Source: Oculina patagonica
Taxonomy: Eukaryota
NCBI RefSeq assembly: GCF_052425735.1
Contig: NC_135759.1
Location: 29,388,001 to 29,452,000, forward strand
DNA: 64,000 nucleotides
Direction: 5' to 3'
The position numbers were made by a program, and so were the translations under genes. How positions within the stretch are numbered: position 1 is the stretch's first letter; every line of letters starts with the position of its first letter. The notes under the pieces were generated by a model. That model saw nothing but the letters and a program-made list of their open reading frames with translations, was not told the origin of the DNA and did not search any database. Of the stretch, positions 16,235 through 44,308 are shown one piece after another.

Positions 16235-19200
16235 ATGAAGAACATTTGGTTGATTTTGTTAGTAATCGCTGTCGTGTTGCTCGTCGCAGCAGAGTCTAAG
16301 AGAGACCGCAAGCCTGGTAAAAAGTTTGGGCTGGGTAAAGGAAAAGGAGGCAACAAAAGGCCAAATAAAAATGGTAAGTTATTTGACAACGATTTTCAAT
16401 TTGTAAAATTGAAAATATAAACAATTAGCACCGTAGGCAAGAAATGCGCGTTAGCTTTTATCTGAATGATTACAGATACCACTCTGCGCCAATATTTCGA
16501 TACGTCATGATCCTGTTGAATATCGCAGAAACACTAGTAGATGTCTGCGCATTCTTGTGCAGCTACTCAGTGTTCGTGTTTAGAATTAGGAACGTAAATG
16601 ATCTGTCGCGTATTAAGACAATTTCCAAACAATGATTCGCTCTGCAATTTTTATGTTTGGTTTAAAATGGTGTCATTTGATGTTTTAACAGTCATGATAA
16701 AGAATTCTCAGGTATAGGAATGAACGGGAATTCTTAGAAATGACCGGGATTTCTAAATCTTTAAACTGATTGTGTTTTCTTATCCTCCACCAGAATGCCC
16801 CAGAAACTGCATAACCTGCGGGCTAGCTGGGAGATGCCTCGAGTGCGACGACGGATTTGCCAAAATCACCTTGCCCAAACGAGCGAATAAAACCATTTGT
16901 GTTCCTTGCAGTCAACAGCCATCAAACAAAAGAAAAGGCCTGAACCGAGACAACTCCAAATGTCCTTCAGGTAAGGATAGCAGAGGATTTTGTCATCATT
17001 ACCGTGTCTAATGGTCAAGTCACAATTTCCCACTACTTGGTCTCTGTTTATTTCTTGTTATTATGCTTGGGAGAATAAAAGTACAATCGTTCCTTTGTTC
17101 CCATGACCTTGGATCACACTGGAGCTTGTATTGTTTCTTGATCCGTGTTGATTATTCGAGTGACAAAGGGCCATGCGCCAAAGTGACAATTATCACGGGC
17201 TGTGAAATTACCCAACTGCTGCTTGACATCTGTCATATCGTATCGCTGTGCACGTGCTCAAATTTACCTGAAAGGCTTGATAATCAAGTTAAAATGACCT
17301 TTCTAATTCCAGACATGTTATGATACGTTTGATCTGTTATAACAATGTACAGGGGCCAACTGTGATCAATTATTTGTTTGCCACTTAATAGTGCTTTATT
17401 ACTGTACTTATATGTAGTCTTTCGCATGTGATGATTCAGGGTGATTTTACCAAACCCCGTCAAAAAGTTATTACTTCTTCACATACAATAAGACTAATTC
17501 CATGGTTTCCTACTGTTTAGCTTTGACTATTACGCACTAACTGCTAGATATTGTTTTGTGGGTTAAATGAAATCACTCTATCTACTTAGTTGTTTGGGCA
17601 ATACCATCTGTAAATGGGAATGCTAATAAAATTGTTGTTATTGTTTTTGTAGTAGTTGATCACCTTTCCTCCTAACAGCGGCTTAGAACTATGAGGTAAC
17701 AATTAACCAGGCAGCAAATTAGACAATTTGTTCATGATATCAAAGATGCCAGGGTACCACTTAGCTCGTGTGGCAGTGTTGTAATACATTTACATGTACA
17801 CTTAATTGAAGAAATGTTGACTTTGTAAAAAGCATAAACCATGAACGATAAGACACAATGTTTTTTTCTTTTGGGGTCTAAAAAGCGTGATTTAAGCAAC
17901 CTGCCATATCATAATGCTTATTTTGTCAAAGACAGGGATTAATTTTTCAGATTTCCCAGCAAACATTGGGTCGCATCTTTCATGGTTTATGCTTTTCACG
18001 GGTCAACGTTTCTTCAATTATAAAGTATATATAGATTTAAAATCGTAAAACAAAGAGACTTAAAATACCATAATTACAAAGTAGTTTATAAAATAGTAAT
18101 AATTAAAAGGTTAAAAAGTAGAAACGATGCAAAGATATAAAGATGTAAAAGACATATCATAATCACATTTGTAAGTTAGCCAAACAAATGGGGTTAAATC
18201 GGCGGTAACAAACTCAACGAAAAAACGTTGCCTAATGTGCTTCGACTTGTGTTGCATGTTTCAGTGCCTACACCCGCACCTGTCTGTCCTAAGAACTGCT
18301 CAAGCTGTCAAGATGGAACCTGCCTTGTCTGTGACGGTGGATTTGCGTTAGTTTCTAGGCGTAAAAATAAAACAATCTGTATTCCCTGTGGCTTGGGAAG
18401 AAATGGCAAAAAAGGCGACCGATCACAGTGTGGTGCAGGTAATTGTTCTTGTTGTTGCTCTGTCTTGAGATGTGACTTAAAAGTCTTGTCCCTTAAGCTG
18501 ACAGTCAGTTCAGTTGAATTCATCTCCCTTTTAATTTTGGGCAACTTCTTAGAAGGTAGCGAAAACTTGAATTAACCGGTTCCATTTGTTGGTTTGCCGG
18601 ACTCAACCGGGATGGCTTCTTTCAGACACTGTTAGCTGTGAAAAAATAATAAAACTAAGAGATTCATCTAAAGGAACTACGTCATGGGGATTTTTCAGAT
18701 TTTTGGCTTAAACTGCTCTACTCGCCCTACCTGCTATAGTTATGGTTGTAATATTTCATTTCAAAAATGGCTTGTAAATGATGTTGATGTTGATAAAATT
18801 AGAGGTAAGCAACCCATAAAAGACTTTACCTTTTTACATCCAAAGAAAGATATAACCTTAATGTAGGGATAGAAATTAAGTTTCGGCTATAAATATCGGT
18901 CTTTCTTTTTTCAACTATAATTATAATATCGGAAACAAATAAAAAAGTTTAGCCTCAATTTTTCAAAGTGGCAAACCATTTCAATCGTTATAGCCATCTG
19001 CAGCCAAAGACGCTTGTTAACAGTTGCAGTGCTCTAACATAGCAATTGTCAATAAAAATGGACCATTATTTTAGGTTTCCTGCGACATAAATATAAATTT
19101 TGGCAATTCAAAAATCTGTTAAAATCAGTGACAAAGCCCCCTTGAAATTCCCTAGCTTTTCATTTCCTCGCCACATGTACCCATTAAAACAACTGCTGCA

Positions 19201-20494
19201 ATCGTGAAATAAATTTTTAAATTTGCTTTTAATATTGTCTTTCAGAGTCTTGTGGAAAAGGCTGTCTTAACTGCACAGAGAGCATCTGCAGTGAATGCAA
19301 AGATGGATTCGAAATGATTGAAGAGAAGAATAAGTGTAAAAAGAAGAAAGGCAAGTTCTAATTCATTAGATGCTAGATGCAAGAGTCTGTTCGCAGGCTA
19401 GTATGTAGACCACCTTCCAATCAGGACTTAACAATCCCTGTTCTTTTTCGGTTATAATTAATGTGTGTCTTTCAAACAACACATTGTTCTGAGGTGTTCT
19501 CACACCGCAAAAAATTACTAATATTGATGTATTATCTCTGAATCGGTAATCCAAACATCGACTTGAAGGCCAGCCAGAACTCTGGACTCCAAATGCCGCC
19601 GATTTTCCCATAAGGCATTTTATTAACAATGGCAATCAAATCTTAATCCTCCCCATCGACAAAAAACCTCATCATACCAGTTTTTCTAGACAAAATATCT
19701 TCATCTTCCAGAAGCCAAGAAATTTTGTAAACAAGGGAGTTCGATAGCTGGCGTATTCTTATACGCTTTTGTTATCTACTAACTACTCTACTACTTCGTT
19801 CACAGATTGTGGAAAAGGTTGTCTTAATTGCACATCAGGTGTTTGCTCCCAGTGCAAAGAAGGCTTCACTCTCAACCGGAGGTCAAGAAGATGCGTTAAG
19901 CCATGCACACCCGCTGATCCTGATTTTAAAACTCCAGCCTGTGAAGGAAAAGGCAAAGGAAAGGAAGGGAAAAATAAACGAAAAGGCAAGTTCACTGATT
20001 TCTGTTTTGTTGCATACTTTCATGGATTCAGTCAGGTTCACATTAAAAGGAAAGTGTCACGAGAAATCTTCTAAGTTTTGTAAAGAGGCCCTGTTCCGGC
20101 CAAAAATGTTTAGTAAATTACTCGCAATCAATGGTTTTCGAGAAACTTTCTTTCAACTTGAAAACTTCAACTTGAAATTTTCATTAAATTTGAAAACAAC
20201 GGCCCGACGTTTTCAAGATTACGTCCAAAACTTTCCTACCAATTTGTACCCAAACAACATTTTAAGGACTTGTAAAGTACGTTTCAGCAAGGCCAGGCCC
20301 CTATGAGTGGATTTACAATTCAAACCAACACTTTCATGGGATTTTCAAATTGCACTATAAAATCTTAGTGATACTGCCCCTTTATGGTTTAAACTAAGCA
20401 GTGTACTGATACGTTTCTTTCTGTTTAAAAAACAGGAGGCAAAGGAAAACCAAAGCGCAAGCCGACACCTAACCCTGTAACAAAACCACAGTAA
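16235..20494 (+). CDS. Secreted cationic furin-like-repeat protein, type A (gene 1, 277 aa)
   Basis: Exons 16235-16373, 16794-16970, 18265-18438, 19246-19350, 19806-19985, 20436-20494 total 834 nt in frame; all introns phase 1; introns 4 and 5 use AG|GCAAGT donors. Signal peptide MKNIWLILLVIAVVLLVAA, K/G-rich arm, four CxxxCxxCx4-5CxxC modules, tail GKGKPKRKPTPNPVTKPQ*. AATAAA at 20552, 20651 and 20699. Confidence 0.9.
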
Positions 20495-21292
20495 CTGCAG
20501 ATTCAGAAGACCACTGCCCGTATTAAATGGAAACTACCTATACCGGAGCCGAATAAAGCCACAGTAACCTAACACTTCTAAACTAACCCAGCACAACCAC
20601 ACTAACGCAAGACAGCACAGACAATCGCTTAACATAACCAACTGATTAGTAATAAACATTTAACTATAATTGCAAGAACATGGTTGCGATCATGTTGAAA
20701 TAAAAGCTGATTGGATCAAGCCATTGTTTTCCTTTATTCCTAGCTTCATAGTTACAGCACTTACTCTTTAGCTTAGTGATTATTTCATGTATAAACAGAA
20801 TTAACAAAATCACACGGGGTGATTGATAAGGGTTTTGAATAGATTAGAGAAACCTGTTTTTATTAAGTTCGGGTTATTGAGAACCTGTATTACTAGACGG
20901 AACTGTCACAGATACGAAGAGACCGTTGATCGCTGTTATTGAAGTATCATATGTAGAATAGAAAGTTTCGTATTTTGTTATAAAGCTGCACAGTTAAAAT
21001 CTGTTGTTGTATTTCCAAATCTGACTGTTATGAGCGTGCAAGGAAAACTTGTTATCATGCCAGGGCATTGGCTGACCATATCCAAAAAGTTAAGATAGTT
21101 ATTACGTGATCTTCCCCACCCTTCTTGTCCTCTACTGTGTAGCAATGCATTTGTTTCTTGATTAAATGTCCATCAATCCAAAAGGAAAAAAAAAACTTTT
21201 GTATGGAAATCATTGAAGAGGAATTGCCAACTCTCATATCGGTATCGTAGCAACGAAATTCTACAACCCGCGCGCAAGGAAGTCAGGGGGTA

Positions 21293-21780: not shown

Positions 21781-22329
21781 TATCCCTCTTAATATCAGGG
21801 GGGTAGAGGTTAGGGTGTGCTGACTCCACTTACCCGGCCTATCTTATTCAATTTTTTCACGACCCTGTACCCTTTTGCTTAAAGCGGTCTTTGATTCGAT
21901 TAAACGCTTAAACGCCGGGTACCGTATAAACGCCGGGTATCTAAGGTGCAGTTGAAAATAGAAGTTAATTAAACGCGGGGTTCATCAGGCTAAGTTTGAA
22001 TAAATGCTGGGGGTGTTTAATCGAGAAAATACGTTTGCCCCTCTTACCTTTAAAGGCCAAGGTTTCCTTTTCCGTGCCGGCGGCCGCAATTTAAAAATAT
22101 CTTGACAAACTCATATTATGTAACATGACAAACATGAGTAATGATTCAAACTCACCCAGGGCGCATACTTCAAGCTTCGCAGCGTGTTTTTCGGTTCCCG
22201 CAGACGGCAACTATTTCTGAAATCCCTTACCGTGACCTTTAGTGCATTAAATGAAAACAATGCAATTTTTTTACTTCCCACATTAAGCAAAGCATTTTAT
22301 TTTAGCAAAGCGTTAACAGCCTATCAGTT

Positions 22330-27200: not shown

Positions 27201-27458
27201 CAGGCATTACTGTCTTTTAAAACTGGTCTGTATTTAACTTAATCCGTGGCTCTGTGGCTAATTTTTATCTTTATTCTTATTTTTTTTCGTTGTTTTTAAT
27301 TGTTTTGTAGTGGAGTCAATAGGTTTTTTTTGAGTCCAGATTTTTTGAGTCCAAGTTTTTTTGAGTCCAGAGTCCAGAGTCCAGAGTCCAGAGTCCAGAG
27401 TCCAGAGTCCAGAGTCCAGAGTCCAGTCCAGAGTCCAGTCCTTGTTTTATACTATGCC
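24236..27458. mobile_element. 3.2-kb non-autonomous Mutator/MULE-like element in the promoter of gene 2
   Basis: TIR GGCATAGTATAAAACAAGGACTGG plus (CTGGACT)n subterminal arrays; perfect 9-bp TSD TTAAATAAC at 24227-24235 and 27459-27467; empty site visible at ~41295. Confidence 0.9.
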
Positions 27459-27648
27459 TTAAATAACGTATATGACACGCTGTTTGTGACGGCGAAGAGG
27501 CAATTAATTGTTCAACACCTACGCACCCCATTGTTTCTAGACATATCTGGAGTAAACCGATCTCAGTTAACAGTCCTGAAAATACCGAGATGAAAAGGAC
27601 TGTCCCATTTGCGCAATTCAGTCTTGGAAAATCTTCGAAGGCATCACT

Positions 27649-30600
27649 ATGAAGAGCGTTTTGATAACTTTGTTGTTGGTCGTCGCTGTGCTGCTTGTTA
27701 CAGCTGAACCCAGAAGACGAGGCGGAAAAGGAAAACCCGGTGGACAGAGACCTGGAGGCCCGAGACCATGGCAAAAGAAGGGTAAGTTACAAAACCAGTT
27801 ATGTCTTCTTCTGTTATCAACTGCAAATCCAGTAGTTGATTTATTGTTTTACATTTGGTGTCCCCAATGATTTTGTTCTTTATGTTTAGAATGTCACAGA
27901 AACTGTTCAGACTGTCAAGAGGGGACTTGCCGGGCGTGTGATGACGATTTTGCGCTGAAAACGATAACCCTTCGTCGCTTTAATAAAACTACCTGTGTCC
28001 CTTGTCGGCGACTTAAGATGAAGAACCCTGCTCTTTTTCTTGAACAGTGTGTGACTGGTAAGTAATTTCACTTGAAATTCTGATGATGTTGGTACAAATG
28101 CTTCGAGTCCCGTATACAGTCAACGGGCTAAAAAGCCAGAAGGGAGAATTTCATGCGCGGATCGTGCACCACGGACACTTGATTTTCATTTATTCACGCA
28201 ACACGCGCGCGGTACACGTTTCGAACTTTTCACTTATTGAGCCCAGTTTTATATATTTGGTCGTCTTTAGAGACGAAAAGGCTACACCCTCATCGAAGCA
28301 ATAATTTTTTTCTCCATTTCAGCAACGCATTAGGTGTCTACGTCAGAGCGTCCCTTTAATTAGTCAATGAGGGGATATTATCCTTGGCTACCTACGTACT
28401 GTCCGCTTTATAGAGGGTGTCCATATATAAGTTTGACCATTAGACAAAAAGCTTTGCATGAAATTTTGAATTATAGTTTATAATTTATTTGATAATTATG
28501 CTGATCTTTTCACTTGAAAGAAATTACCTATTTTTTATTAAACTTTCCAATTACGATACACTTATTACAATGTAAAGGGGGCCAACTGTGATCAATTAAG
28601 ACTGTAATTAAGGTTTTACTGTTCTTATATTTAGAACGTCTATCGCATGTACGTATTGCATTGTTTTAGATTGTTTTTACTAAACTCGTAGAAAGGTATT
28701 ACACTTTCAGATACTATTAGACTAATTCCATGGTTTCCTATTGTTTTGTTTTGTCTATTACGCACTAACTGCTAGATATTGTACTATAAGTAAATGAAAT
28801 CACTCTAAGTGTACTTAGCTTTTCGGGCAATACCATCTGTAAATGGGAATGCTAATAAAATTGTTGTTGTTGTTTTTGTAGTAGTTGATCACCTTTCCTC
28901 CTAACAGCGGCTTAGAACTATGAGGTAACAATTAATCAGGCAGCAAATTAGACAATTTGTTCTTGATATCAAAGATACCAGGGTACCACTTAGCTCGTGG
29001 CAGGTCCTTAGTACAATAATACAATGCAAACAATGCTTTTGTGTTGTAATGCATTTACATGTACATCTAACTGAAGAAATGTTGACTTGTAAAAAGCATA
29101 AACCATGAACGGTAAGACTGGATGAGTAATATTCCATTTTCCCTTTCTTAATAATCACAATGTTTTCTTCTTTTGGAGTGTAAAAGCGAGATTTAAGCAA
29201 CCTGTCATATCATAATACTTATTTTGTCAGACAGGGAATGATTTTTCAGATTTCCCAGCAAACATTTAGGTCGCATCTTTCATGGTTTATGCTTTTCACG
29301 GGTCAACGTTTATTCAATAACATATATTTATAGTTTTATAAACGTAAAACAAGGAGACAAAATACCATAGCTACAAAGTAGTTTATAAAATATAAAAGGT
29401 TAAAAGATAAAAACGATGCAAAGATGTAAAAGACATATCATAATCACATTTGAGAGTTAGCCAAACAAATGGGGTTAAATCGGCAGTGACAAACTCAACG
29501 GCCTTATGCGCCTACTGGCGCGACGAGTATTGATGATGATGACAAACTCAACGAAAAAACGTTGTCTAATGTGCTTCGACTTGTGTTGCATGTTTCAGTG
29601 CCTACACCCGCACCTGTCTGTCCTAAGAACTGCTCCAGCTGTCAAGATGGAACCTGCCTTACCTGTGACAGTGGATTTGCGTTAGTCTCTCGGCGTAAAA
29701 ATAAAACAATTTGTATTCCCTGTGACTTGGGAAGAAATGGCAAAAAAGGCGACAGATCACAGTGTGGCGCAGGTAATTGTTCTTGTTGCTTTGTCTTGAG
29801 TTGCGACTTAAGTAGTGAAAAATTAAATTAACGTTCCATTTGTTGGTTAGCCTGCTTAGCAGGAGCCTGTCATGGTAGTTTGCCAACGTGTTTTTTTTTT
29901 TTTGCGCCTTTCGTGTTTTCCGAACGCGCGCTCAAAAACTCCACAGGCGCCTGCTTCGCAGGCTGTTCGTTGGTTTGCCGGACTTAACCTGGATGGCCTT
30001 TTCGGACACTGTTAGCTGTGAAAAAATGTTGAAACTAAGAGATTTATGTCACGGAATTTCGCAGATTTTTGGTCTAAACTGTTCCAACATTAGAACATTT
30101 CAAGAAAGATATAACCTTAATTTGGGGATAGAAAGCCTCCGCTATAAATATCGGGTTTTTTTTTCAGCTTTAAATATCGGAAACAACTAAAAAACTTAAT
30201 CCTCGTTTTTTCAAAGTAGCAAACCCTTTCCTTCCTAGCCATCTGCAGCCAAAGACGCTTGTTAACAGTTGCAGTGCTCTAACATAGCAATTGTCAATAA
30301 AAAATGGACCATTATTTTAGGTTTCCTACGACATAAATACAAACTCAGTTGGTTGTTGCTGTTATGACAAAAGCCCCTTTAGATTCCCTAGCTTTTTATT
30401 TCCTCGCCACATGTACCCACTAAAACAACTGCTGCAATCATGTGTAATGAATTTTAAAATTTGCTTTTAATATTGTCTTTCAGAGTCTTGTGGAAAAGGC
30501 TGTCTTAACTGTACAGAGAGCATCTGCAGTGAATGCAAAGATGGATTCGAAATGATTGAAGACAAGAATAAGTGTAAAAAGAAGAAAGGCAAGTTCTAAG

Positions 30601-31640
30601 TCACGAGATGCTAGATGCAAGAGCTCCCGTATGTAAACCGCCTTCCATTTAGAACTCTAGACTCCTTTAATATGTCGCCGTTTTTCCGAAAGGCATTTTA
30701 TTTATTACTCAGTATACCAGTTTTTCTAGACAAAATATCTTTATCTTACTCGCTCTAGATATATATTTTAAAAGCCAAGGAATTTTATAAACAAGTGAGT
30801 TCATTAGCTGAAAGTTCCTTGTACGCTTTTGTTATCTGCTAACTACTTTACTACATCGTTCACAGATTGTGGAAAAGGTTGTCTTAATTGCACATCAGGT
30901 ATTTGCTCCCAGTGCAAAGATGGCTTTACTCTCAACCGGAGGTCAAGAAGATGCGTTAAGTCATGTACACCTGCAGATCCTGATTTTAAAACTCCAGCCT
31001 GTGAAGGTAAAGGCAAAGGAAAGGAAGGGAAAAATAAACGAAAAGGCAAGTTCACTGATTCTTAGATTTTTGCATACTTTCAAGGATTCAGTAAGCTTCA
31101 CATTTAAGTGACAGTGTCACGAGAAATCTTCTAAGTCTTATTGTAAAATATTCTAGAACTACGAGGATACAATCACTGTTAAGCATTAATCATTTTCCAA
31201 GATGTAAAGAGACCCTGTTAGAGAATCCAATTACAAGTATCCGGCCAAAAATGTTTAGTAAATAACCCACAATCAATGGTTTTCGAGAAACTTCTTCCAA
31301 CTTGAAAACATTTCATTTTGAAATTCTCATTAAATTTGAAAACGACGGGCCGACGATTATGTCCAATTCTTTCCTACCAATTTGTACCCAAACCACGTTT
31401 TAACAATATTAAGGACTTGTAAAGTACGTTTTAGTAAGGCTAGGCCCCTATGAGTGGATTTACAATTCATACCAACACCTTCATGGATTTTCAAATTGCA
31501 CTATAAAATCTAAGCGATACTGCCCCTTTTTGGTTTAAACTAAGCAGTGTACTGATACGTTTCTTTCTGTTTGATTAACAGGAGGCAAAGGAAAACCAAA
31601 GCGCAAGCCGACACCTAACCCTGCAACAAAACCACAGTAG
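27649..31640 (+). CDS. Secreted cationic furin-like-repeat protein, chimeric B/A (gene 2, 272 aa)
   Basis: Exons 27649-27781, 27890-28057, 29599-29772, 30484-30588, 30866-31045, 31582-31640 total 819 nt in frame. Exons 1-2 match genes 3/4; exons 3-6 match gene 1, including both GC donors. Confidence 0.9.
29501..29539 (+). mobile_element. Severely 5'-truncated RTE LINE tail
   Basis: GCCTTATGCGCC...GAGTATTGATGATGA resembles the RTE 3' end at 61712-61765; flanked by a TGACAAACTCAACG direct repeat; absent from gene 1 (~18210). Confidence 0.75.
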
Positions 31641-31809
31641 CTGATTCAAAAGACAACCGCTGGAATTAAATTGAAACTACCGGAGCCGAATGAAGCCACA
31701 GTAACCTAACACTTCTAAACTAACCCACCACAACCACACTAACGCAAGACAGCACAGCCAATCACTTAACATAACCAAGTAACTGATTAGTAACAAACAT
31801 TTAACTATA

Positions 31810-31930
31810 CAGTTGAATCCCGATAACTCGAACCTTCAAGGGAAATATATCGAAAAAGGTTCGAATCAAAAAAGGTTCGAGTTAGCGGGAGTTCCGGAGT
31901 TACTGAGGGTTCGAGTTATCGGGATTCACT
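31810..31930. mobile_element. Tc1/mariner (pogo-like) MITE in the 3' UTR of gene 2
   Basis: TA|CAGTTGAATCCCGATAACTCGAACC...GGTTCGAGTTATCGGGATTCACT; absent downstream of gene 1. Confidence 0.75.
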
Positions 31931-34342
31931 AACTCTTTTAGCTTTGTAATTATTTCAGTAACAGAATCAACAAAAACGCGCGGTGTGATTGATAAGGGTT
32001 TTGATAGTTTAGAGAAACCTGTTTGTATTTAGTTCGAGGTAATGAGAATCCGATTTACTAGACGGAATGTCATGGCTACGAAGAGAACGTTTATCGCTGT
32101 TATCGAAGTATAATATATGTAGAATAGAAGGCTTCATATTTTGAATAATAAAGCTGCACAGTTAAACCAAGTCTGAATGTTATGAGCGTGCGAGGAAAAC
32201 TCGCATTATGTCAGGGCACTAGCTGACCATATCCAAAAGTTAAGATAGTTATCAGCTTCTTCTTACAGGATGTACACCAATACAATACCTTCCCCTAGCT
32301 TGTACGTTATCTTCCCAACCCTTGTATGGCAATAATTAAAGAGAAATTGCCAACTCTCATATCGATATCTTAGCAACGAAATTCTACAACCCGCGCGCAG
32401 AGTGGAAAGTCAGGGGGTGCACCTCTTAATATCAGGCATCAGGGGGGTGGGGGTAGAGGTAAGGGTGTGCCTGCTCTATTTACTCTGTCTATCCTATTCA
32501 AAAACGGAATATTCAAGTATTATATGATTTTCAAGACCCTGTACCCTTTTGCATTTAGCGGTCTTTGATTACTATACTACTTAGTCTAACTGTCACTTCG
32601 TCTCATTCGCCCTTCTGTCAATTTGAAGTCTTTTATAAAGGCCAAGGTTTTCTTTTCCGTGCCAGCGCCCACAATTTAAAAATATCTTGACAAACTCAAA
32701 TCATGTGACATGACGACAAACTAATTATTCAACAATAACTCACCCAGGGCGCATACCTCGGACTTCGAAGCGTGCTTTCCGGTCCCAGACTGTAACTATT
32801 TTTGAAATCCCTTACCAGTGCCCTATTTGAAAACGACACAAAATTCTTTACTTCCCAAAATTCGACTTTTATGCCTCATTTAAAACAGATTCACAAAAAT
32901 CTGGTCTTTGGATGTCATAAACAATCCGACCTCATAACATAACTACTATAAATGAATTTTGACTAGGGAATCATAAAGTATTGATCCTGCTGTGCGTCGA
33001 CCAACTTTGTTTCCAAAATGAGACCATTATCTATTTATTTCTGATTTTATTATGTTTTGTTCAGTTTAAACGGGTAATGCCGTGTACTGTTATGCTTAAT
33101 AAATTTGTTGTCGTCGTCGTTATTAATATTTTTTTATGCCTCTCAAAAAAACAACAATAAAAGCAGCACTAGCCGTATTTTTGATGCCAATAACATCATC
33201 TCAAAGAAGTTATCCACCAAACACTTGATTGATACCCCAATACATTAATTCTAAAATGGAAATGTCGTATTTACCAAAATGGTGCAATTTTATTAATCAA
33301 AAGATAAAATTACTTATTCGTAGGTCCGCTACGTGTTTTACTGGTCAGTACTGTACTTAGGAACTGGAACGTGCAAAAAGCAAAACTCTACGCCGTGTTG
33401 CGCGTGTTTTCTGGAGACTGCTAGCCTGTATTGTAGTATACGTAATGCTGACACTGAACTGGCTGCTAGCCAATGCATCGTCCGGAAGTTCTCTCTCTTT
33501 TTTTTAAACGTTTTTTAACATTTTTCCGGTAATGGAACTAATATGTTTAATATCCTTCTGCAGGTCAAAGAGTGACACGGCAGGAGTCACGTTCAAAAGA
33601 ACATCAAATAACTTTTAACGCCCTATAATGTACGCTAATGTATAATTTTAGATAGTTTTATGATCAAAGCCCGTAGAAAGCATTCGCTCACTGTAGCTGA
33701 GAGGTGCACTGAATCAGAATGTGCCCACAGCAAAATAGCCCATGATTTCTGCACTCCTACTGGCCCAATGATATGGCGCGTGCAGCAAAAGTGTGTATGA
33801 CGACTGCTGACTCATCATTTGGCGCGCCTGCACATGGTCAACGTATGCATGTGTGATATGACGACAAGTGAAACGAAGTACGTTTCGGGTTTTTTGAGAT
33901 TGTCTTCTATCTGAATGAATCATTCCTGGGAAGTATAATCCAAAAGGGACATACGTACTGAGACAAATAAGGTCATCTTTTGAAGACTTCACGGCTGTAC
34001 TGTAGTGCCAAAAATAATTTTCTTCCTGTGGTAACAATTACATCGGGAATGTAACAAAGAAACGTGCCAACACTTACGAGGGCGTATTATCTCGCATGGC
34101 ATCAGCCAAGGCTATCTTTCAACTGGAACTGCAAATGCCCACGTTACGAGGCTTAAATTACGGATGTGACACGCTGTTTTTGACGGTAAAGAGGCAATTA
34201 ATTGTTTAACACCTACGTACCCCATTGTTTCTAGACAAATCTGGAGTAAACCGATCTTGGGTAACAGTCATGAAAATACCGAGATAAAAAGGACTGTCCC
34301 ATTTGCGCAATTCAGTCTTGGAAAATCTTCGAAGGCATCACT

Positions 34343-37108
34343 ATGAAGAGCGTTTTGATAGCTTTGTTGTTGGTCGTCGCTGTGCTGCTTGTTACAGCTG
34401 AACCCAGAAGACGAGGCGGAAAAGGAAGACCTGGAGGACTGAGACCCGGAGGACCGAGACCAGGAGGACGAAGACCGGGAGGACCGAGACCATGGCAAAA
34501 GAAGTTTCGGGGTAAGTTACAAAAGCAATAATGTCTCCATCTGTTATCAACTGTATATCCAGTAGTTCTGATTTATTGCTTTACATTTGGAGTCCCCAAT
34601 GTTGTCGAAGCTGATTTTGTTCTCTATGTTTAGAATGTCACAGAAATTGTTCAGACTGTCAAGAGGGGGCTTGCCGGGCGTGTGATGACGATTTTGCACT
34701 GAAAACGATAACCCTTCGTCGCTTTAATAAAACTGTCAGTGTCTGTGTCCCTTGTGGTCGGCGACTTAAGATGAAGAATCCTGCTCTTTTTCTTGAACAG
34801 TGTGTCACTGGTAAGTTAATATCCTTTGAATTTTTTTATGATGTTGGTTCAAATACTTCGAGTCCCGTTGACAGTCAAGGGGCTGTAAAGCCAGAAGGGA
34901 GAACTTCATGCGCGGATCGTGCACCACGGGCACTTGATTTTCATTTATTCGCGCAGCACGCGCGCGGTACACGTTTCGAACTTTTCCCTTTCGTCTTTAG
35001 AGACGAAAGGGCTACACCCTCTCCGAAGCAATATTAGACTGCAAAACAGTCGTTTTTTTCTCCAAAGTCGTTGGAAAAGCGCTTATCGCTCTCGTTCGAA
35101 AGCCGAGCGCGTTCGCAAAAGAAACGACTATTTTGCAGTCTAAAGCATTATGTAAAACTTTTACAAATAACAAAATCCTCCTGAAATTGCCCAAAATACA
35201 CTGTTATTAAAACCCCTTCTGCTTGTACTCCTTTTTAAAAACGGTTCTCTTATATAACGTTTCCCTTAGAGTGTCCCAGAAACTGTACGACTTGTGAGGA
35301 CGGCTCCTGTAAAATATGTGATGATGGATTCTTCAACGTTGAGACACGACTTCTGCAAAGGAAGATATGCGTTTCTTGCGGTCCGAGAATGAAGAAAAAT
35401 TGGCCGGACGTTTATGTGAAAGAATGCTCACAAAATGGTAACAGTCTCTTTATGTACTGGCTCGCTTGAGAAGGACCACATTGAACGAGTTTCTTTGTAT
35501 TCATAATAAATACGTTGTGGCTGCCATCTTTCAGTGGAAATTCTGTAAAATGTTTTGACTACCGGGCATTTAGTCTATTTAAGACCGTGCCCGGCTGCCG
35601 GGCATATAGCCACAGCCATATAAATAAACAGAGAAGATAATCTTTTTTTGAGAACGGAGGGAGAAGTGGCCCAGTCTTATCTGGAAACGCTCACATAATA
35701 ATCATTGTCATCAACAACAACTTTCTTACTTTGTCAAATGGCTTCTAGCTGACCAGAGGTATCCTACTATTGAATCGAGGGCACTTTTAAAATAGAAATA
35801 ACAATAATTAATAATCAACTTCCAACTCGTTTAATTAATATATATCTGATCGGAACTTACAATAATTTCTCGGCGTTGGCCGAACACGGTATAACTTGGT
35901 ATTAAAAGATTGTTTATGTTCTCAATACAGGCTGTGGACGTGGCTGTGCCAACTGTCCTGAGCCTGGTGTATGCACCGAGTGCGAAGAAGACCTAAAGCT
36001 TTTCACTCCACCCGGCAGTAACATCACCAGGTGTATTAAAAATTGCCCCCCATTTTACACACTCGAGAAGGGTTCGTCTCCTCCAAGATGCGAAGTTAAG
36101 CAAATCACAAAACCAAACAACAGTAAGTTTTTCCTTCAAATTGTTGTATAAGCGGAAGTAATAAACTTGGATATATTGTCTAGGTGTGCTATCAAACTCA
36201 AACTCGTATTGCTCTTAATCCTCTGGGCCAGTGCGTTGCGATCATACTGAGGGAGTTTCCTGATAAAAGGGATACAACGGACGGAGGAGACTCGTGATAA
36301 AAAGCCCTAAGGATCAATTGATGCGTCAAGGGAAAGAGTTTTAAATGGGACCGTAAGTGTCCCATTCCAAATATCCATGGAAGTGGGTAATGTCTTAATT
36401 GCAACCTTCTTTTCTATTTTATCTTGCAGAATGTGGAAAAACCTGCGCTGCATGCACAGAACAAGGAATTTGTACGGAATGCTTAAAGCCATCGGTACTC
36501 ATAAAATTTGGTGACCGCTCAATGTGCAGACAGCGATGCCCATTCCATTTCAGAAAGTTTGTCGATCCAAAAACGAGGGCTACAATCTGCGAGAAACTTA
36601 ACAAGCAACAGCGTAAAGGTTAGTTCTCTAAAAATAAACATGGAGGGTTGGGCAAGGGGGATTAGTACATACAGAATTCCTTAGCTCTTACAAAATGACA
36701 CGAATTTTCATAGTCTTTTTGCACTGAGTTGAACGAAAAAAAGGAAAAGATGCGGGTGCAAAAAATAAAGGAAAGGGAAAAATATTATTCCGTCCTTTCC
36801 TTTATTTCATCACAACCTCCTGACATTATGCCACTTACTTCAATTTGGGAGAAATTGATAAGCCATCCTAGCTGCTTTTTGCAGTACTCATGCACTAGGT
36901 AAAGGCCGTTGCCATGTTCAAACTAATACATCAACCTAATAAGCTATCTCTATCGCATCGCATTGTTGTGCGATTCAATAATGAAATAACGTTATCACTG
37001 GGCTCTTTATGAAAATGCTGATTTCTTAATTGGTTAATTGGTAATTAACGTTGTTTTTCTCTTCTTTAATTTACAGGCGGAAGAAAGAATCTGTCTGACC
37101 CATTCTAA
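34343..37108 (+). CDS. Secreted cationic furin-like-repeat protein, type B (gene 3, 308 aa)
   Basis: Exons 34343-34511, 34634-34810, 35270-35437, 35931-36122, 36430-36618, 37077-37108 total 927 nt; all phase-1 GT-AG introns. Signal peptide and (RPGGx)4 arm. Exons 4 and 5 are canonical furin-like repeats (CGRGCANCPEPGVCTEC...CIKNCPPFY...C). Ends GGRKNLSDPF*. Confidence 0.9.
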
Positions 37109-37882
37109 ATGAAGTGATTTCGGAAAGCGCTTCAACAAGGAAGCATTTTTGGCATATTTCTCTTTTCTTTTTTCCTTACAGAAATCAGATTAGGTTAGGT
37201 GTGTGTTGATGTCTTGTGCTCCGGTCAAACATTGAACCCACACCCTAAAACATAGCACAGTTTCGTGCGACAATATAGAAATAAGGACCAAATTAAATCA
37301 AATCGATTCTAAGACGGCACCACCTTGTTTAGGGCAAAAGACGAAGGACATTTTTGCCACAAAAAGGACTTGATCGTCTTTACTGAGCTTAGTCGAAAAA
37401 AAAAACAAAAGAATTAAAACGAATAAGAACTTTGGCACGCTGACAGCATTGTAATTTGTTAGTTAGTTTTGAGCAGGGTTTTAAAAAGGCAAGTGACACG
37501 GGACACGCTGCTAAATTTAATTTGTTGCTGAATATCACCTTTTACGCAGTTAACTTGTATGAGCGTGTGCCCAACATGTGTCGTCTTCTTTATATTTGGT
37601 ATCATTTAAAATAAATGTTATTAAACTGAGCTGAATTGCGTTGTTGACTTCAATTTAATATATTTAAGCCTGGAGTGTACATAAATACTTGACAAAATAC
37701 CGAAACGAAATTTCTGAAAACTGAATAAACCCAACCCAACCCTAACCCAAATTTCAGATGCAAAAATCATTTTGAAAATAAGCCAAATCGAATGTTTGGA
37801 TTTATACTCAGTTATAGCTCTTGAAGAAAGATAATCCCCTACCGTAGAGCTTGTTTTGCCTTTTACGCTGTTAGGACTGTGT

Positions 37883-37954
37883 TAGCCTGCGTTGCAGACG
37901 AACAAAACCCCGGTTATGTATAACCGGGGTTTTGTTCGTCTGCAACGCAGGCTA
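37883..37954. mobile_element. 72-bp palindromic miniature element, TAG...CTA ends, 9-bp TSD
   Basis: TAGCCTGCGTTGCAGACG...CGTCTGCAACGCAGGCTA; TSD GGACTGTGT; absent in the duplicate copy (~45100). Similar elements at 23978-24082, ~29848-29965, 35035-35142 and ~39808-39893. Confidence 0.85.
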
Positions 37955-38528
37955 GGACTGTGTTAGAGAATGCTCAGATCTACTGTGGCACTTTAAGTTT
38001 GGGTTTCAGAACGTTATGTTCAGAGAGTTTTACTCTGTGGTATTCTTGCGCGCACCAGATGTGTATCAGCCAATAAAATCTCCTGCATCACAATCAGTTC
38101 AGGTCAGTTCCTTTGTCCCAGCAACCTTCGTGTTTTTCAGACAACTTAAGAGGAATGCGTGACACCATTTGTTTGTAACGCAAAATGGACCACACCACGC
38201 CTGATATATGCACTAGAATACTATTCTCGCAGCCGTTCAATGGAACGTCTATTGAACTAGTAAAGGTAAAAGATAAAATGAATACTATTGCATTACGTAA
38301 AATATATATCCGTGATCACGTGCGGAGATGAATAGTTCGAAATTGATTCTGTTTACACAAAAATATTCGGTATGAACACATATGCAAATCGCAAGTCTGT
38401 CGTCCATTTCGCGCCAAAGCGTGTTTGAACCTGTTAAAGCCAATTCCTGCACATCCTCAATCCAGTTTCTACTCTAGGCTTTTCATCCTGTGAATTATAA
38501 AAAGATTATTTCTCTGATTTCGCCAAAG

Positions 38529-38738
38529 TCATAAGAGTTTAACGGGATTCTTCTCTTCAAACAAATGATGCCTGGTGTAATCGTTGTTCAGCACTCGATT
38601 GGGCGTCCGTTCCAGTGTTGTTTTGATGTCTTTAAGCGGCTGTCTTGTGCAGATTATTGAAACGATCCACAATGTAACGAATAGGGCAAACAGAAGCGCA
38701 GAAATATCAATTGCTGTAGCCAAATCGAGACCCGACAT
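38529..38738 (-). CDS. Small single-pass membrane protein (69 aa)
   Basis: ATG-initiated ORF with an N-terminal TM segment (AIDISALLFALFVTLWIVSII). Intact in the duplicate (2 synonymous and 1 non-synonymous change). Similar to the ORF at 48693. Confidence 0.6.
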   Translation of the reverse strand: MSGLDLATAIDISALLFALFVTLWIVSIICTRQPLKDIKTTLERTPNRVLNNDYTRHHLFEEKNPVKLL

Positions 38739-39176
38739 GATTCGTGAATATCATCGATGCGTTTACGATTGGAGCGGTCGCAAAGTTGTTTCGTGGTTGC
38801 GTGACTTGGTACACCCAATCTCATGTTGCATACAAAGTGATTTTGTCCAGATTTTTTTCTTTCAGTGAAGAAACACGAAGAAAATGATAGTAACTTCCTT
38901 TGATCATCAGATAAAAATATAATAAAGCACATAGTCAAAAACCATCAAGAAATAACGAATGATGTCGCATCGCCGTGGAAATGAAGGGTGTCACGTACGT
39001 AAATATTGTAACTGAATGTCAACATCAGTGATCAGAGATAAGTCGTGCTCGCCCGCGATCGCTTCGAATCCAGCTTTATGTGATATATTTTACTGATGAA
39101 ATGACATGATAATCGCATTCCCGGCTAAATTGCAGCACAAAGACAGAACGTTGGTCAATTAAGATGGAATTCAGCC

Positions 39177-39551
39177 ATGGAAGAGGAAATACAACCGAGA
39201 TCTGTGCGAAAGAAATTGATGCGCGACACCATTTTCATTTTCGTTGGATTTTGTTTCATCATTTTGTGCTTCGTTTTCCTGGGAGTCGCACAGCAACAAC
39301 AACATATAACTGAGGAGCACTGTGAGGATTGTAATGGTGCGAATAATCCAAAAGTGTTTCGACTTCTTTCGGCGATATGTTTCATATTTGGGTTTACGAT
39401 CATGACCGTGTTTTGGTGGCATTGGAAAGCGATCAGAAGTGCTTATGTATTGCACCAAAGACACTTGGAATTGGAGAGATTGATAGGGAACGTTGATCAA
39501 CCAGTCAGAAGAGCAAATAGATTATCACTTGGAAAGAGAAACAGCGGTTGA
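39177..39551 (+). CDS. Small two-TM membrane protein (124 aa)
   Basis: GCCATGG start; two hydrophobic helices around a CEDC loop. The duplicate at 46368 has no indels or stops and several synonymous changes. Confidence 0.7.
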   Translation: MEEEIQPRSVRKKLMRDTIFIFVGFCFIILCFVFLGVAQQQQHITEEHCEDCNGANNPKVFRLLSAICFIFGFTIMTVFWWHWKAIRSAYVLHQRHLELERLIGNVDQPVRRANRLSLGKRNSG

Positions 39552-40044
39552 TATATAGATATATCTACCCAAGTAAACTCCCATAAGCATATTTTGTAAG
39601 ATGTCAATCAAGCCTGACTGGAATTTGCATGACTCAGCAGTGGTATTTTTTATGTTGAATTTTGATTACTGTACTACTTCAGATTTCGTTTCAAGTGAAA
39701 ACGTGCCCGTTGAAGAAAATGGTAAAGTTTTTTGTGAACCTTGATTGACACAAAACGTGAAATGACAGTTTTTTTAATTTTATAGAAAACCGTCCGACCG
39801 TGACAGATAGCCTCGACTCTCGTTGGGCTCGTCACGCGTTCGTTCGTAGGGAGGAACGCGTGACGAGCCCAAAGAACTTCTGCGTAGGGGCTAGTGGCTT
39901 CATGATGAGATCATGAGAGAGCAACAACTCAATAAAACGTGAAAGGGCATTTCTGTTATATGTAAATCGTGATATCTAGATACAACTCCAACTAAGGTCG
40001 TAAAAGCTCGAACAAAGTTGTCAAAAATAATTATATAAACGAAT

Positions 40045-40544
40045 NNNNNNNNNNNNNNNNNNNNNNNNNNNNNNNNNNNNNNNNNNNNNNNNNNNNNNNN
40101 NNNNNNNNNNNNNNNNNNNNNNNNNNNNNNNNNNNNNNNNNNNNNNNNNNNNNNNNNNNNNNNNNNNNNNNNNNNNNNNNNNNNNNNNNNNNNNNNNNNN
40201 NNNNNNNNNNNNNNNNNNNNNNNNNNNNNNNNNNNNNNNNNNNNNNNNNNNNNNNNNNNNNNNNNNNNNNNNNNNNNNNNNNNNNNNNNNNNNNNNNNNN
40301 NNNNNNNNNNNNNNNNNNNNNNNNNNNNNNNNNNNNNNNNNNNNNNNNNNNNNNNNNNNNNNNNNNNNNNNNNNNNNNNNNNNNNNNNNNNNNNNNNNNN
40401 NNNNNNNNNNNNNNNNNNNNNNNNNNNNNNNNNNNNNNNNNNNNNNNNNNNNNNNNNNNNNNNNNNNNNNNNNNNNNNNNNNNNNNNNNNNNNNNNNNNN
40501 NNNNNNNNNNNNNNNNNNNNNNNNNNNNNNNNNNNNNNNNNNNN
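40045..40544. other. Assembly gap (500 N)
   Basis: Run of N between two near-identical ~6.7-kb blocks. Confidence 1.
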
Positions 40545-41484
40545 GGAGACTGCTAGCCTGTATTGTAGGCCACGTAATGCCGAGACTGAACTGCATGCCA
40601 GCCATGCGCCAATGCATGGTCCGGAAGTTCTCTCTCTTTTTTTAAACTTTTTCTTAAAACATTTTTCCGGTAATGGAACTAAGCTGTTTAATATCCTTCT
40701 GCAGGTCAAAGAGTGATACGGCAGGAGTCACGTTCAAAATAACAATTACTTTTAACGCCCATACTTTACGTAATGGATAATTTCAGACAATTTTATGATC
40801 AAAGACTTAGAGTTTTTTCTTACAAAATGTAGCTTTAGCGGGTACTGAATCAGAATCGCTCACTGAAGCTAAGATGGGAACATGATTTCTGCATTCCTAC
40901 TGGCCCAGTATATGGCGCGTGCAGCAAAATTGCGTATGATGACTGATGACTCATAATTTGGCGAGCTTGCACATGGTCGACGTATGCATGTGTGATATGA
41001 CGACCTGTGAAACAAAGTACGTATTGTTTTTCTTTTTGAGATTATCTTTTATCTGAATGGATCATTCTTGGGCAGTGTATTCCAAAAGGGACATACTTAC
41101 TGAGACAAATAAGGTCATCTTTCAAAGACTTCTCTGCTGTACTGTAGTGTCAAAAATAACTTCCTTCTTGTGGTAAGAATTACATCGGGAATGTAACAAA
41201 GAAACGTGCCAACACTTACGAGGGCGTTTAATCTCGCATGACATCAGCCAAGGCTATCTTTCAACTGGAACTTCAAATGCCCACGTTACGAGGCTTAAAT
41301 AACGGATGTGACACGCTGTTTTTGACGGCGAAGAGGCAATTAATTGTTTAACACCTACGTACCCCATTGTTTCTAGACGTATCTGGAGTAAACCGATCTC
41401 GGGTAACAGTCATGAAAATACCGAGATAAAAAGGACTGTCCCATTTGCGCAATTCAGTCTTGGAAAATCTTCGAAGGCATCACT

Positions 41485-44308
41485 ATGAAGAGCGTTTTGA
41501 TAGCTTTGTTGTTGGTCGTCGCTGTGCTGCTTGTTACAGCTGAACCCAGAAGACGAGGCGGAAAAGGAAGACCCGGAGGACTGAGACCCGGAGGACCGAG
41601 ACCAGGAGGACGAAGACCGGGAGGACCGAGACCATGGCAAAAGAAGTTTCTGGGTAAGTTACAAAAGCAATATTGTCTCCTTCTGTTATCAACTGTATAT
41701 CCAGTAGTTCTGATTTATTGCTTTACATTTGGAGTCCCCAATGTTGTCAAAGCTGATTTTGTTCTTTATGTTTAGAATGTCACAGAAATTGTTCAGACTG
41801 TCAAGAGGGGACTTGCCGGGCGTGTGATGACGATTTTGCACTGAAAACGATAACCCTTCGTCGCTTTAATAAAACTGTCAGTGTCTGTGTCCCTTGTGGT
41901 CGGCGACTTAAGATGAAGAATCCTGCTCTTTTTATTGAACAGTGTGTCACTGGTAAGTTAATATCCTTTGAATTTTTTGATGATGTTGGTATAAATACTT
42001 CGAGTCCCGTTGACAGTAAGGGGTGTAAAGCCAGAAGGGAGAACTTCATGCGCGGATCGTGCACCACGGGCACTTGATTTTCATTTATTCACGCAGCACG
42101 CGCGCGGTACACGTTTCGAACTTTTCCCTTTCGTCTTTAGAGACCAAAGGGCTACACCCTCTCCGAAGCAATATTAGACTGCAAAACAGTCGTTTTTTTC
42201 TCCAAAGTCGTTGGAAAAGCGCTTATCGCTCTCGTTCGAAAGCTGAGCGCGTTCGCAAAAGAAACGACTATTTTGCAGTCTAAAGCATTACGTAAAACTT
42301 TTACAAATAACAAAATCCTCCTGAAATTGCCCAAAATACACTGTAATTAAAACCCCTTCTGCTTGTACTCCTTTTTAAAAACGGTTCTCTTATATAACGT
42401 TTCCCTTAGAGTGTCCCAGAAACTGTACGACTTGTGAGGACGGCTCCTGTAAAATATGTGATGATGGATTCTTCAACGTTGAGACACGACTTCTGCAAAG
42501 GAAGATATGCGTTTCTTGCGGTCCGAGAATGAAGAAAAATTGGCCGGACGTTTATGTGAAAGAATGCTCACAAAATGTTAACAATCTTTTTATGTACTGG
42601 CTCGCTTGAGAAGGACCACATTGAACGAGTTTCTTTGTATTCATAATAAATACGTTGTGGCTGCCATCTTTCAGTGGAAATTCTGTAAAAATGTTTGACT
42701 GCCGGGCATTTAGTCTATTTAAGACCGTGCCCGGCTGCCGGGCATATAGCCACAGCCATATAAATAAACAGAGAAGATAATCTTTTTTTGAGAACGGAGG
42801 GAGAAGTGGCCCAGTCTTATCTGGAAACGCTTACATAATCATCATTGTCATCAACAACAACTTTCTTATTTTGTCAAATGGCTTCTAGCTGACCAGAGGT
42901 ATCCTACTATTGAACCGAGGGCACTTTTAAAATTGAAATAACAATAATTAATTATCAACTTCCAACTCGTTTAATTAATATATATCTGATCGGAACTTTC
43001 AATAATTTCACGGCGTTGGCCGAACACGGTATAACTTGGTATTAAAAGATTGTTTATGTTCTTAATACAGGCTGTGGACGCGGCTGTGCCAATTGTACTG
43101 AGCCTGGTGTATGCACCGAGTGCGAAGAAGACCTAAAGCTTTTCACTCCACCCGGCAGTAACATCACCAGGTGTATTAAAAATTGCCCCCCATTTTACAC
43201 ACTCGAGAAGGGTTCGTCTCCTCCAAGATGCGAAGTTAAGCAAATCAAAAAACCAAACAACAGTAAGTTTTTCCTTCAGATTGTTGTATAAGCGGAAGTA
43301 ATAAACTTGGATATATTGTCTAGGTGTGCTATCAAACTCGCTCCTCGCGTATTTTTGCGCCTGTAATGCATAATTTTTTGAGTTGACTAAAATTAAAAGG
43401 GTTCGCATTGCTCTTAATCCTCTGGGCCAGTGCGTTGCGATCGGACGGAGGGAGTTTTCCAGATAAAAGGGATACAACGGACGGAGCAGACTCGTGATAA
43501 AAAGCCCTAAGGATCAATTGATGCGTCAAGGGAAAGAGTTTTAAATGGGACCGTAAGTGTCCCACTCCGAATATCCATGGAAGTGGGTAATGTCTTAATT
43601 GCAACCTTCTTTTCTATTTTATCTTGCAGAATGTGGAAAAACCTGCGCTGCATGCACAGAACAAGGCATTTGTACGGAATGCTTAAAGCCATCGGTACTC
43701 ATAAAATTTGGTGACCGCTCAATGTGCAGACAGCGATGCCCATTCCATTTCAGAAAGTTTGTCGATCCAAAAACGAGGGCTACAATCTGCGAGAAACTTG
43801 ACAAGCAACAGCGTAAAGGTTAGTTCTCTAAACATAAACATGGAGGGTTGGGCAAGGGGGATTAGTACATACAGAATTCCCTAGCTCTTACAAAATGACA
43901 CGAATTTTCATAGTCTTTTTGCACTGAGTTGAACGAAAAAAAGGAAAAGATGCGGGTGCAAAAAATAAAGGAAAGGGAAAAATATAATTCCGTTTTTTCC
44001 TTTATTTCATCACAACCTCCTGACATTATGCCACTTACTTCAATTTGGGAGAAATTGATAAGCCATCCTAGCTGCTTTTTGCAGTACTCATGCACTAGGT
44101 AAAGGCCGTTGCCATGTTCAAACTAATACATCAACCTAATAAGCTATCTCTATCGCATCGCATTGTTGTGCGATTCAATAATGAAATAACGTTATCACTG
44201 GGCTCTTTATGAAAATGCTGATTTCTTAATTGGTTAATTGGTAATTAACGTTGTTTTTCTCTTCTTTAATTTACAGGCGGAAGAAAGAATCTTTCTGACC
44301 CATTCTAA
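41485..44308 (+). CDS. Type B furin-like-repeat protein, second copy (gene 4), with a mutated exon-3 donor
   Basis: Exons 41485-41653, 41776-41952, 42410-42577, 43071-43262, 43630-43818, 44277-44308. The donor after exon 3 reads G|TTAACA instead of G|GTAACA. Confidence 0.75.

Follow-up and report, generated by a model that had tools for sequence, protein, structure and literature searches.

Between positions 16235 and 44308 on the forward strand of a 64,000-nucleotide stretch of the Oculina patagonica genome (hereafter the window), we found four tandem genes, referred to as g1 to g4, that encode small, secreted and strongly basic proteins built of furin-type (FU) repeats. Each gene comprises six exons on a shared plan (a signal peptide with a basic arm, four cysteine modules of one exon each, and a short basic tail), every intron is phase 1, and the genes belong to two types, A and B. 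We favor, with a probability of roughly 0.55, a reading in which these proteins act as partner-binding FU rods tethered to polyanions. The detailed mechanism, with partner binding by the core and tethering by the basic ends, is more tentative and somewhat short of even odds; in the anatomy of the proteins and their family assignment we have high confidence. What is new here is an uncharacterised family on a known fold, present in databases under misleading automated names.

The window comes from a chromosome-scale contig (C2) of the 529-Mb genome. In a six-frame scan of the window, cysteine-rich open segments were confined to the forward strand at 16.2-44.3 kb, where they fall into four groups; the ATG of g1 lies at 16235, and 44308 is the final base of the g4 stop codon. 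The genes and their unusual splice sites are as follows:

16235-20494, + strand: g1, type A, 277 aa, 30 Cys, net charge +38 (gene model); exons 16235-16373, 16794-16970, 18265-18438, 19246-19350 (GC donor), 19806-19985 (GC donor) and 20436-20494.
27649-31640, + strand: g2, chimeric gene, 272 aa, 30 Cys, net charge +33 (gene model); exons 27649-27781 and 27890-28057 (type-B-like), then 29599-29772, 30484-30588 (GC donor), 30866-31045 (GC donor) and 31582-31640 (type-A-like).
34343-37108, + strand: g3, type B, 308 aa, 32 Cys, net charge +29 (spliced RNA contigs); exons 34343-34511, 34634-34810, 35270-35437, 35931-36122, 36430-36618 and 37077-37108.
41485-44308, + strand: g4, type B, tandem duplicate of g3 with 98% amino acid identity (RefSeq match and tandem comparison); exons 41485-41653, 41776-41952, 42410-42577 (skipped), 43071-43262, 43630-43818 and 44277-44308.
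19351 and 19986 (g1), 30589 and 31046 (g2), + strand: GC-AG intron donors of type A introns 4 and 5.
42578-42579, + strand: splice donor of g4 exon 3, destroyed (TT, compared with GT in g3; sequence comparison), with the exon-3 frame intact.

An earlier reading of this DNA from its letters only (the sequence-only reading) had proposed four genes with a common six-exon plan and recurring cysteine patterns, and these are borne out by the sequence, by the RNA joints of g3 and by database proteins. The four-module plan holds for the gene structure; the product of g4, however, skips exon 3, and type A introns 4 and 5 use GC donors.

Direct RNA support is available for g3 (and for g4 through cross-mapping). 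Contigs of four public RNA-like runs with three organism labels, placed on 34300-37300, give exon depths 50-100x those of the introns, and spliced contigs with good consensus sites define GT..AG joints at 34511/34634, 34810/35270, 35437/35931, 36122/36430 and 36618/37077. The resulting translation is identical to KAL9984503.1. Two of the four runs match g3 at 90-99% identity under another organism label, and spliced g3-type mRNA is therefore also present in a related species. One RNA contig reaches 344 nt upstream of 34300, and a read-through transcript from g2 into g3 may exist. Without exon 3, g4 encodes 252 aa with 24 Cys, identical to XP_078359509.1; the joint from exon 2 to exon 4 was seen in one RNA run, where acceptance at 90% identity leaves either g4 or g3 as its source.

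For g1 and g2, support comes from RefSeq models, orthologous mRNA contigs and, for g1, the share of its sequence words found in RNA-like runs. Exons 4, 5 and 6 of these two genes cannot be joined by canonical donors. The corresponding join, ...CKK[IK]K|DC..., occurs in the Pocillopora damicornis and Stylophora pistillata RefSeq proteins and in a 279-aa mRNA-contig product, which places GC donors after exons 4 and 5 in g1 and g2; the donor sequence AAAG|GCAAGT ends both exons in both genes and is also found in Pocillopora. Two other solutions for type A, a canonical T|GTAAAA donor in the sixth Cys codon of exon 4 and an isoform terminating in exon 4 (...KKKKGKF*), were dropped in favor of the GC donor on the same evidence, namely the RefSeq models of Pocillopora and Stylophora and the mRNA products in Logan. 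As deposited, g1 and g2 (201 and 196 aa) stop in exon 4, the GC-AG introns having been missed. Our g1 model equals the depositors' model P0068 (ACROYT_G006801, KAL9984501-type) over its first 198 aa, up to the first GC donor, and shares its exon plan with Pocillopora XP_027047119.1 and with the 279-aa product (P0067) of the Logan mRNA contig. Of the words sampled in 16500-17270 (771 bases), a stretch of which g1 exon 2 makes up 23%, a share of 0.22 occurs in RNA-like runs; this share is what coverage of the exon only would give and is consistent with, rather than proof of, transcription of g1. The g2 model is identical to residues 1-272 of RefSeq XP_078353828.1, a 602-aa entry that continues across the g2 stop codon (31582-34343) into g3, whose signal peptide it retains internally; no AG acceptor was seen before 34277, and the fusion looks like an annotation artefact. 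Taken together, transcription of all four paralogues is largely shown.

The products (252-308 aa, 25-31 kDa) are fully accounted for by signal peptide, arm, modules and tail. The hydrophobic signal sequence follows the pattern MK..L[IL]ALLLV...A|E, and every module opens with C-x3-C-x2-C-x4/5-C-x2-C. Counted by module, type A has 8, 8, 6 and 8 cysteines and type B has eight in each; type-B modules 3 and 4 read C-x3-C-x2-C-x5-C-x2-C-x14/16-C-x3-C-P-[PF]-[FH]...C. The basic hairpins read LRRFNKT, LPKRANKT and SRRKNKT, and N-x-T sequons sit at hairpin tips, as NKT in module 1 (also in type A module 2) and as NIT or NFT in type-B module 3. The tail (10-19 aa) starts with a conserved RK-GG-[KR] at the boundary of exons 5 and 6, and the RNA joints and exon maps show no further exon between module 4 and the tail. 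The proteins had been described as strongly cationic, and their mature net charge is indeed +27 to +38 (pI 9.4-9.6), with orthologues at +25 to +41. This charge is in fact concentrated at the ends: in g3 the arm carries +13 and module 4 carries +10, whereas modules 1-3 are near neutral at only +1 to +3. Conservation is likewise uneven, non-Cys identity among type-B orthologues being 63-65% in modules 1-3 vs. 38% in module 4. The arm itself is the following feature:

34403-34510, + strand: N-terminal arm of g3, Gly/Pro/Arg-rich, PRRRGGKGRPGGLRPGGPRPGGRRPGGPRPWQKKFR, net charge +13; predicted to be disordered (pLDDT <50 at residues 18-55).

Its start, BBBGGKG[KR]PGG, is conserved in types A and B and in the orthologues, and type A repeats BBB-GG-K-G[KR]P in the tail. 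The heparin-binding consensus is XBBBXXBX, and the arm motif BBB-GG-K-G fits it. No conserved dibasic or furin site able to release the arm was seen in the family proteins.

The sequence-only reading had taken the modules for furin repeats, and the fold points the same way. Two parts of g3 matter here:

34634-35437, + strand: the first two modules of g3, of divergent FU form (AlphaFold model of this pair alone, pLDDT 86).
35931-36618, + strand: modules 3 and 4 of g3, a canonical FU pair that aligns with R-spondin Fu1-Fu2 (Foldseek, VIA-align, profile).

All modules show the FU cysteine spacing C-x3-C-x2-C-x4/5-C-x2-C ... C-x2/3-C ... C, and in the AlphaFold models they form beta-hairpins that are stacked and joined by disulfides. 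The AlphaFold model of g3 has a pLDDT of 68 overall and 75-86 in the modules. When it was searched with Foldseek against the PDB, R-spondin Fu1-Fu2 structures took ranks 1-33 (best E 1.5e-5, probability 1.0), followed by the cysteine-rich domains of ErbB, EGFR and IGF1R, and VIA-align superposes module 3 (model residues 172-228) on residues 39-97 of RSPO1 with Z 7.3 and a root-mean-square deviation (rmsd) of 2.2 Å over 57 residues. Among AlphaFold models of Swiss-Prot proteins the neighbors are R-spondins, here again the best match, then PCSK5/6, Giardia VSPs and ciliate cysteine-repeat proteins, so that all structural neighbors of the model are FU proteins. A family profile run against PDB sequences gave R-spondin-1 as its sole match (E ~0.3); matches of the module profile to zinc fingers in the PDB were rejected as spurious, being caused by CxxC spacing, and a feature search of the ESM Atlas was uninformative (best score 0.77). 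In their separate model, modules 1 and 2 each consist of two beta-hairpins followed by two short helices in place of the canonical third hairpin, and an NKT sequon caps the basic hairpin of module 1. Their resemblance to R-spondins is weak (Foldseek E 7.5e-3; Z 3.2-4.3, with R-spondins as the top four of 48,161 chains), and we read them as a probable divergent form of FU. Sequence models do not recover the family: the Furin-like searches that the sequence-only reading had suggested gave nothing, as no Pfam model, including Furin-like, GF_recep_IV and Furin-like_2, matched above its cut-off in single exons, full proteins or orthologues, and Furin-like_2 (PF15913), run over all six frames of the genome, matched other loci and not this window. 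The modules are thus assigned to the FU repeats by predicted fold and not by sequence models.

R-spondins are the closest structural match to the coral family. Both are secreted, with a signal-peptide exon, one FU repeat per exon and a basic C-terminal exon; both have the FU fold (Z ~7, rmsd 2.2 Å, 57 residues) with the cysteine spacing C-x3-C-x2-C-x5-C-x2-C...C-x3-C-P; and both have basic regions suited to glycan binding. RSPO4 is known to have one protein domain per exon and a basic C-terminal exon (PMC3532313). The exon plan of the coral genes parallels that of RSPO4, a resemblance and not a proof of common descent. A plan of one domain per exon is common for shuffled extracellular modules. 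There are also differences. The coral proteins have four FU modules vs. two, an additional basic N-terminal arm and no TSR1, their modules 1-2 close with two helices vs. a third hairpin, the proteins stay below the Pfam Furin-like_2 threshold, and the family was found only in some stony corals.

The residues by which RSPO1 contacts ZNRF3/RNF43 and LGR, and their importance in mutants, have been described (PMC3937510). In a HMMER profile alignment, the coral family has T/P, G, T and N where RSPO1 has its ZNRF3/RNF43 contacts S48, N51, R66 and Q71, the coral N being part of an N-x-T sequon. The phenylalanines of the LGR clamp (F106 and F110 in 106-FSHNF-110) are replaced by T and I/V, g3 having T-E-Q-G-I in this loop and the orthologues T-E-x-G-V, and an aromatic pair is absent from the first hairpin and the clamp loop of every coral module. 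TSP_1/TSR1 is likewise absent by Pfam from the products of g2, g3 and g4 and from the orthologues. The family is therefore not R-spondin, as it has no TSR1 and its ZNRF3/RNF43 and LGR contact residues are replaced.

Other FU systems are more distant. The cysteine-rich region of PCSK5 and PCSK6 has arrays of FU repeats of similar structure and is the source of the automated names; the coral proteins are 250-310 aa long, strongly basic and without a subtilisin-like catalytic or P domain, and Pfam gave no peptidase S8 or P domain match in any family protein. Giardia VSPs and ciliate cysteine-repeat proteins share CxxC-rich, FU-like repeats and appear among the structural matches. The coral genes differ from the VSPs in being animal genes with phase-1 introns, no transmembrane anchor, no CRGKA tail and an unrelated biology, and the best Pfam VSP score is 16.6 bits (cut-off 31.4), in one orthologue only. 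The cysteine-rich domains of EGFR and the insulin receptor (Furin-like, GF_recep_IV) share this repeat fold, although their scores are lower (Z 3-4), and are parts of large receptor ectodomains, whereas the coral proteins have no L domain or kinase. The earlier statement that the family lacks TSP1, a transmembrane segment and a catalytic domain thus stands, as there is also no hydrophobic segment after the signal peptide in any of the g1-g4 products.

The family has a narrow distribution. A phmmer search with module 1 returned 14 proteins among 1.84 billion representatives, and searches of 5.8 billion proteins gave 13 matches with the full-length sequence and 25 with a profile. The matches bearing an organism name are from Oculina, Orbicella, three Pocillopora species, Stylophora and Desmophyllum, all of which we take to be robust-clade scleractinians, and the remainder are unnamed contig products; the restriction to corals proposed earlier is upheld for the named matches of both searches. 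Within the Oculina genome itself, the module profile has no matches beyond this cluster and one small contig, C1528. On this unplaced contig, positions 3280-6468 repeat exons 2-5 of g1 with identical scores, as either a haplotig or a true extra copy. Automated labels of family proteins include "PCSK5-like", as had been predicted, "trophozoite antigen-like" and, for one Pocillopora entry, "R-spondin Fu-CRD domain-containing protein". The sequence-only reading called the family undescribed, which holds insofar as a literature search by protein name, accession and locus tag found no paper on it, the accessions being absent from main texts (skeletal proteome papers included); RefSeq and UniProt already list the proteins themselves, as uncharacterised.

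Orthologues retain 59-65% identity in conserved synteny, and mRNA-contig products of 274-293 aa are present in relatives. Downstream of the type B gene in Orbicella and Pocillopora come a gene of 170-178 aa and then a cytochrome P450 gene on the opposite strand, and the window has the matching order:

48693-48941: first exon of the 170-aa neighbor gene, homologous to the Orbicella and Pocillopora neighbor.
57053-59810, - strand: cytochrome P450-like exons, a synteny anchor (the same gene lies downstream of type B in Orbicella and Pocillopora).

Type A directly upstream of type B was seen, among the relatives, in Pocillopora only. Orbicella has a 329-aa canonical FU gene (…CIKKCPNGFK…) right upstream of type B, where type A would lie; its Oculina homolog is at C2:29177260-29177430, 211 kb from the window, and the two neighborhoods differ. 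In a maximum-likelihood tree, clades A and B are each supported at 100/100 and each contain several species, and it is largely shown that the two types split before these coral families diverged.

The same tree bears on g2, whose 5′ part falls in clade B with g3 and g4 (96/99) and whose 3′ part groups with g1 (94/86). This split agrees with a switch in DNA matches inside intron 2: in a self-BLAST of the window, g2 DNA at 27458-28235 is 86% identical to g3/g4, and that at 28672-32252 is 81-94% identical to g1. The crossover lies here:

28236-28671, + strand: recombination interval in intron 2 of g2, bounded by the last DNA resembling type B and the first resembling type A (self-BLAST).

Thus g2 is a recombinant, with a type-B promoter and exons 1-2 joined to type-A exons 3-6, rather than a third type, and the two gene types proposed before are retained. 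An upstream region of 120 nt is nearly identical in g2, g3 and g4, and g1 does not have it. The gene order (A, B5′/A3′, B) would fit a single unequal crossover between misaligned A-B arrays. Self-comparison of the window further revealed two tandem units:

33413-40044 and 40545-47261, + strand: two tandem duplication units of about 7.1 kb each, with 94.5-96.6% DNA identity.

Each unit contains one type B gene and one 124-aa open reading frame (ORF) with two hydrophobic helices (39177-39551 and 46368-46742, + strand), copied along with the g3/g4 unit and different from the conserved 170-aa neighbor gene of Orbicella and Pocillopora. The later history in Oculina, which is largely shown as well, comprises the unequal crossover in intron 2 that gave g2, a recent 7.1-kb tandem duplication that gave g4, and a later loss of the g4 exon-3 donor that left a three-module protein. 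Elsewhere, the type B gene of Pocillopora has modules 1-2 doubled as an exon pair (405-aa product), so that module number has changed there again. The sequence-only reading also called the family diversifying. This is not supported: dN/dS is 0.19 for g1 vs. g2 (exons 3-6) and 0.43 for g3 vs. g4, values on which diversifying selection was rejected; g1 and g2 are 96% alike in exons vs. 84-88% in introns, and the orthologues remain in synteny at the identities given above. The paralogues are under purifying selection.

In the reading that we favor, the four modules would form an extended, rigid and probably N-glycosylated rod, on which the conserved, near-neutral modules 1-3 may present a specific protein-binding beta-hairpin surface, as in other FU proteins. 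The basic ends (the N-terminal arm with its motif of heparin-binding type, module 4 and the tail) would tether this rod to polyanions. Candidates for these are sulfated glycans, whether on the cell surface or in mesoglea or mucus, and acidic proteins of the matrix. Such a two-part logic, with an FU part for the partner and a basic part for glycans, would be that of R-spondins, whose TSR/basic region binds heparan sulfate proteoglycans (PMC5800842, PMC4926470). As the R-spondin contacts for ZNRF3/RNF43 and LGR are missing, the partner should differ.

Several points weigh against this reading. Tethering and a specific partner are deduced from composition and fold, and no experimental, proteomic or cell-type datum was found for any member. 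The FU assignment depends on predicted structures and cysteine spacing, with no significant Pfam match, and a Z of about 7 counts as "middling" for the structure-alignment tool. High expression was judged from contig depths, which are a poor measure. Further, absence beyond the robust clade means that homologs were not detected by searches of limited sensitivity for short cysteine-rich repeats.

The defense, mucus and skeletal roles raised in the sequence-only reading are guesses, and the defense and matrix readings overlap with the tethered rod rather than exclude it. A host-defense effector, in which the cationic proteins or freed arms bind microbial envelopes or lipopolysaccharide in mucus and kill or agglutinate bacteria, is the strongest competitor, though we think it unlikely. 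The net charge, the Pro/Arg/Gly-rich arm, the abundant mRNA in colony RNA runs and a lineage-restricted tandem family with changed copy number would all suit it; however, proteins of 25-31 kDa with conserved N-glycosylation sequons are unlike the small antimicrobial peptides known from corals, there is no conserved site at which the arm could be released, selection is purifying, and synteny is one-to-one across coral families. Less probable still is a component of the skeletal or extracellular matrix, in which the basic proteins would pair with the acidic matrix proteins of corals or with sulfated polysaccharides at the front of calcification. All named members are scleractinian, the extreme positive charge would complement acid-rich matrix proteins, and disulfide-rich repeat rods are frequent among matrix proteins; yet the family accessions are absent from the main texts of the papers found, skeletal proteome papers included, and no member was detected in complex-clade corals, which also calcify.

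We consider a true R-spondin-type Wnt potentiator very improbable; signaling ligands had been one option in the sequence-only reading. FU modules 3-4 would then bridge coral ZNRF3/RNF43 and LGR while the basic parts bind heparan sulfate proteoglycans. R-spondin Fu1-Fu2 is the closest structural and profile match, and the basic ends and the domain-per-exon plan of RSPO4 (PMC3532313) are shared, but the four ZNRF3/RNF43 contacts and the Phe clamp (residues from PMC3937510) are replaced, no module has the aromatic pair in its first hairpin, TSR1 is missing, and Furin-like_2 finds other loci of the genome and not this cluster. Finally, that the genes are pieces of a larger PCSK5-like convertase or of one long fused gene can be all but dismissed: the automated "PCSK5-like" names and the 602-aa RefSeq model point that way, but an ATG, a signal peptide and a stop codon are present in every one of the genes, a peptidase S8 or P domain is nowhere found, the fused model has another signal peptide in its interior and no visible acceptor, one RNA contig begins at 34314, just upstream of the g3 ATG (although contig ends cannot prove a start), and relatives have mRNA-contig products of 274-293 aa.

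Beyond the tethered FU rod as such, a bolder proposal, which we regard as doubtful, is that robust corals invented this family by turning the design of R-spondins, with FU hairpins and basic arms that bind glycans, to another receptor or matrix partner. It might then serve a lineage-specific signaling or adhesion axis, or act as a cationic organizer of the acidic skeletal or mucus matrix, with module number tuned by exon skipping (g4), exon duplication (the 405-aa Pocillopora form) and exon-shuffling crossovers (g2).

The remaining features of the window concern its gaps and relics. Runs of N occur at 15448-15947, 40045-40544 and 60646-60779. The first stands 288 nt upstream of the g1 ATG, and the g1 promoter is therefore incompletely known. 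The second lies within the cluster:

40045-40544, no strand: intergenic assembly gap, exactly where the first tandem unit (33413-40044) meets the second (40545-47261).

It is 2.9 kb past the g3 stop (37108) and 0.9 kb ahead of the g4 ATG (41485). It adjoins no family exon, so reading-frame continuity is not at issue; the copy number of the family across it cannot be read from the assembly, and further repeat units are possible. Beside the third gap, at 60886-61745 (+ strand), are two 140-aa ORFs resembling fragments of a retroelement reverse transcriptase. At the other end of the window, 8945-9217 (+ strand) is a degenerate type-A-like stretch (…KCDLKNCSSCSSKPC…) with in-frame stops (tblastn E 0.008-0.06), which is possibly what remains of another member of the family.

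The family opens no long-standing question at present. In corals, lineage-specific secreted proteins underlie calcification, mucus and immunity, and if the proposed mechanism is true, corals own an abundant secreted family that is mislabelled as a protease (PCSK5-like) or a Giardia antigen, which affects how coral expression data are interpreted. The locus is also a clean natural case of module-level evolution through phase-1 exons, by a crossover chimera, by skipping after donor loss and by exon duplication, and its proteins are tractable for expression, glycan-binding and localization work.

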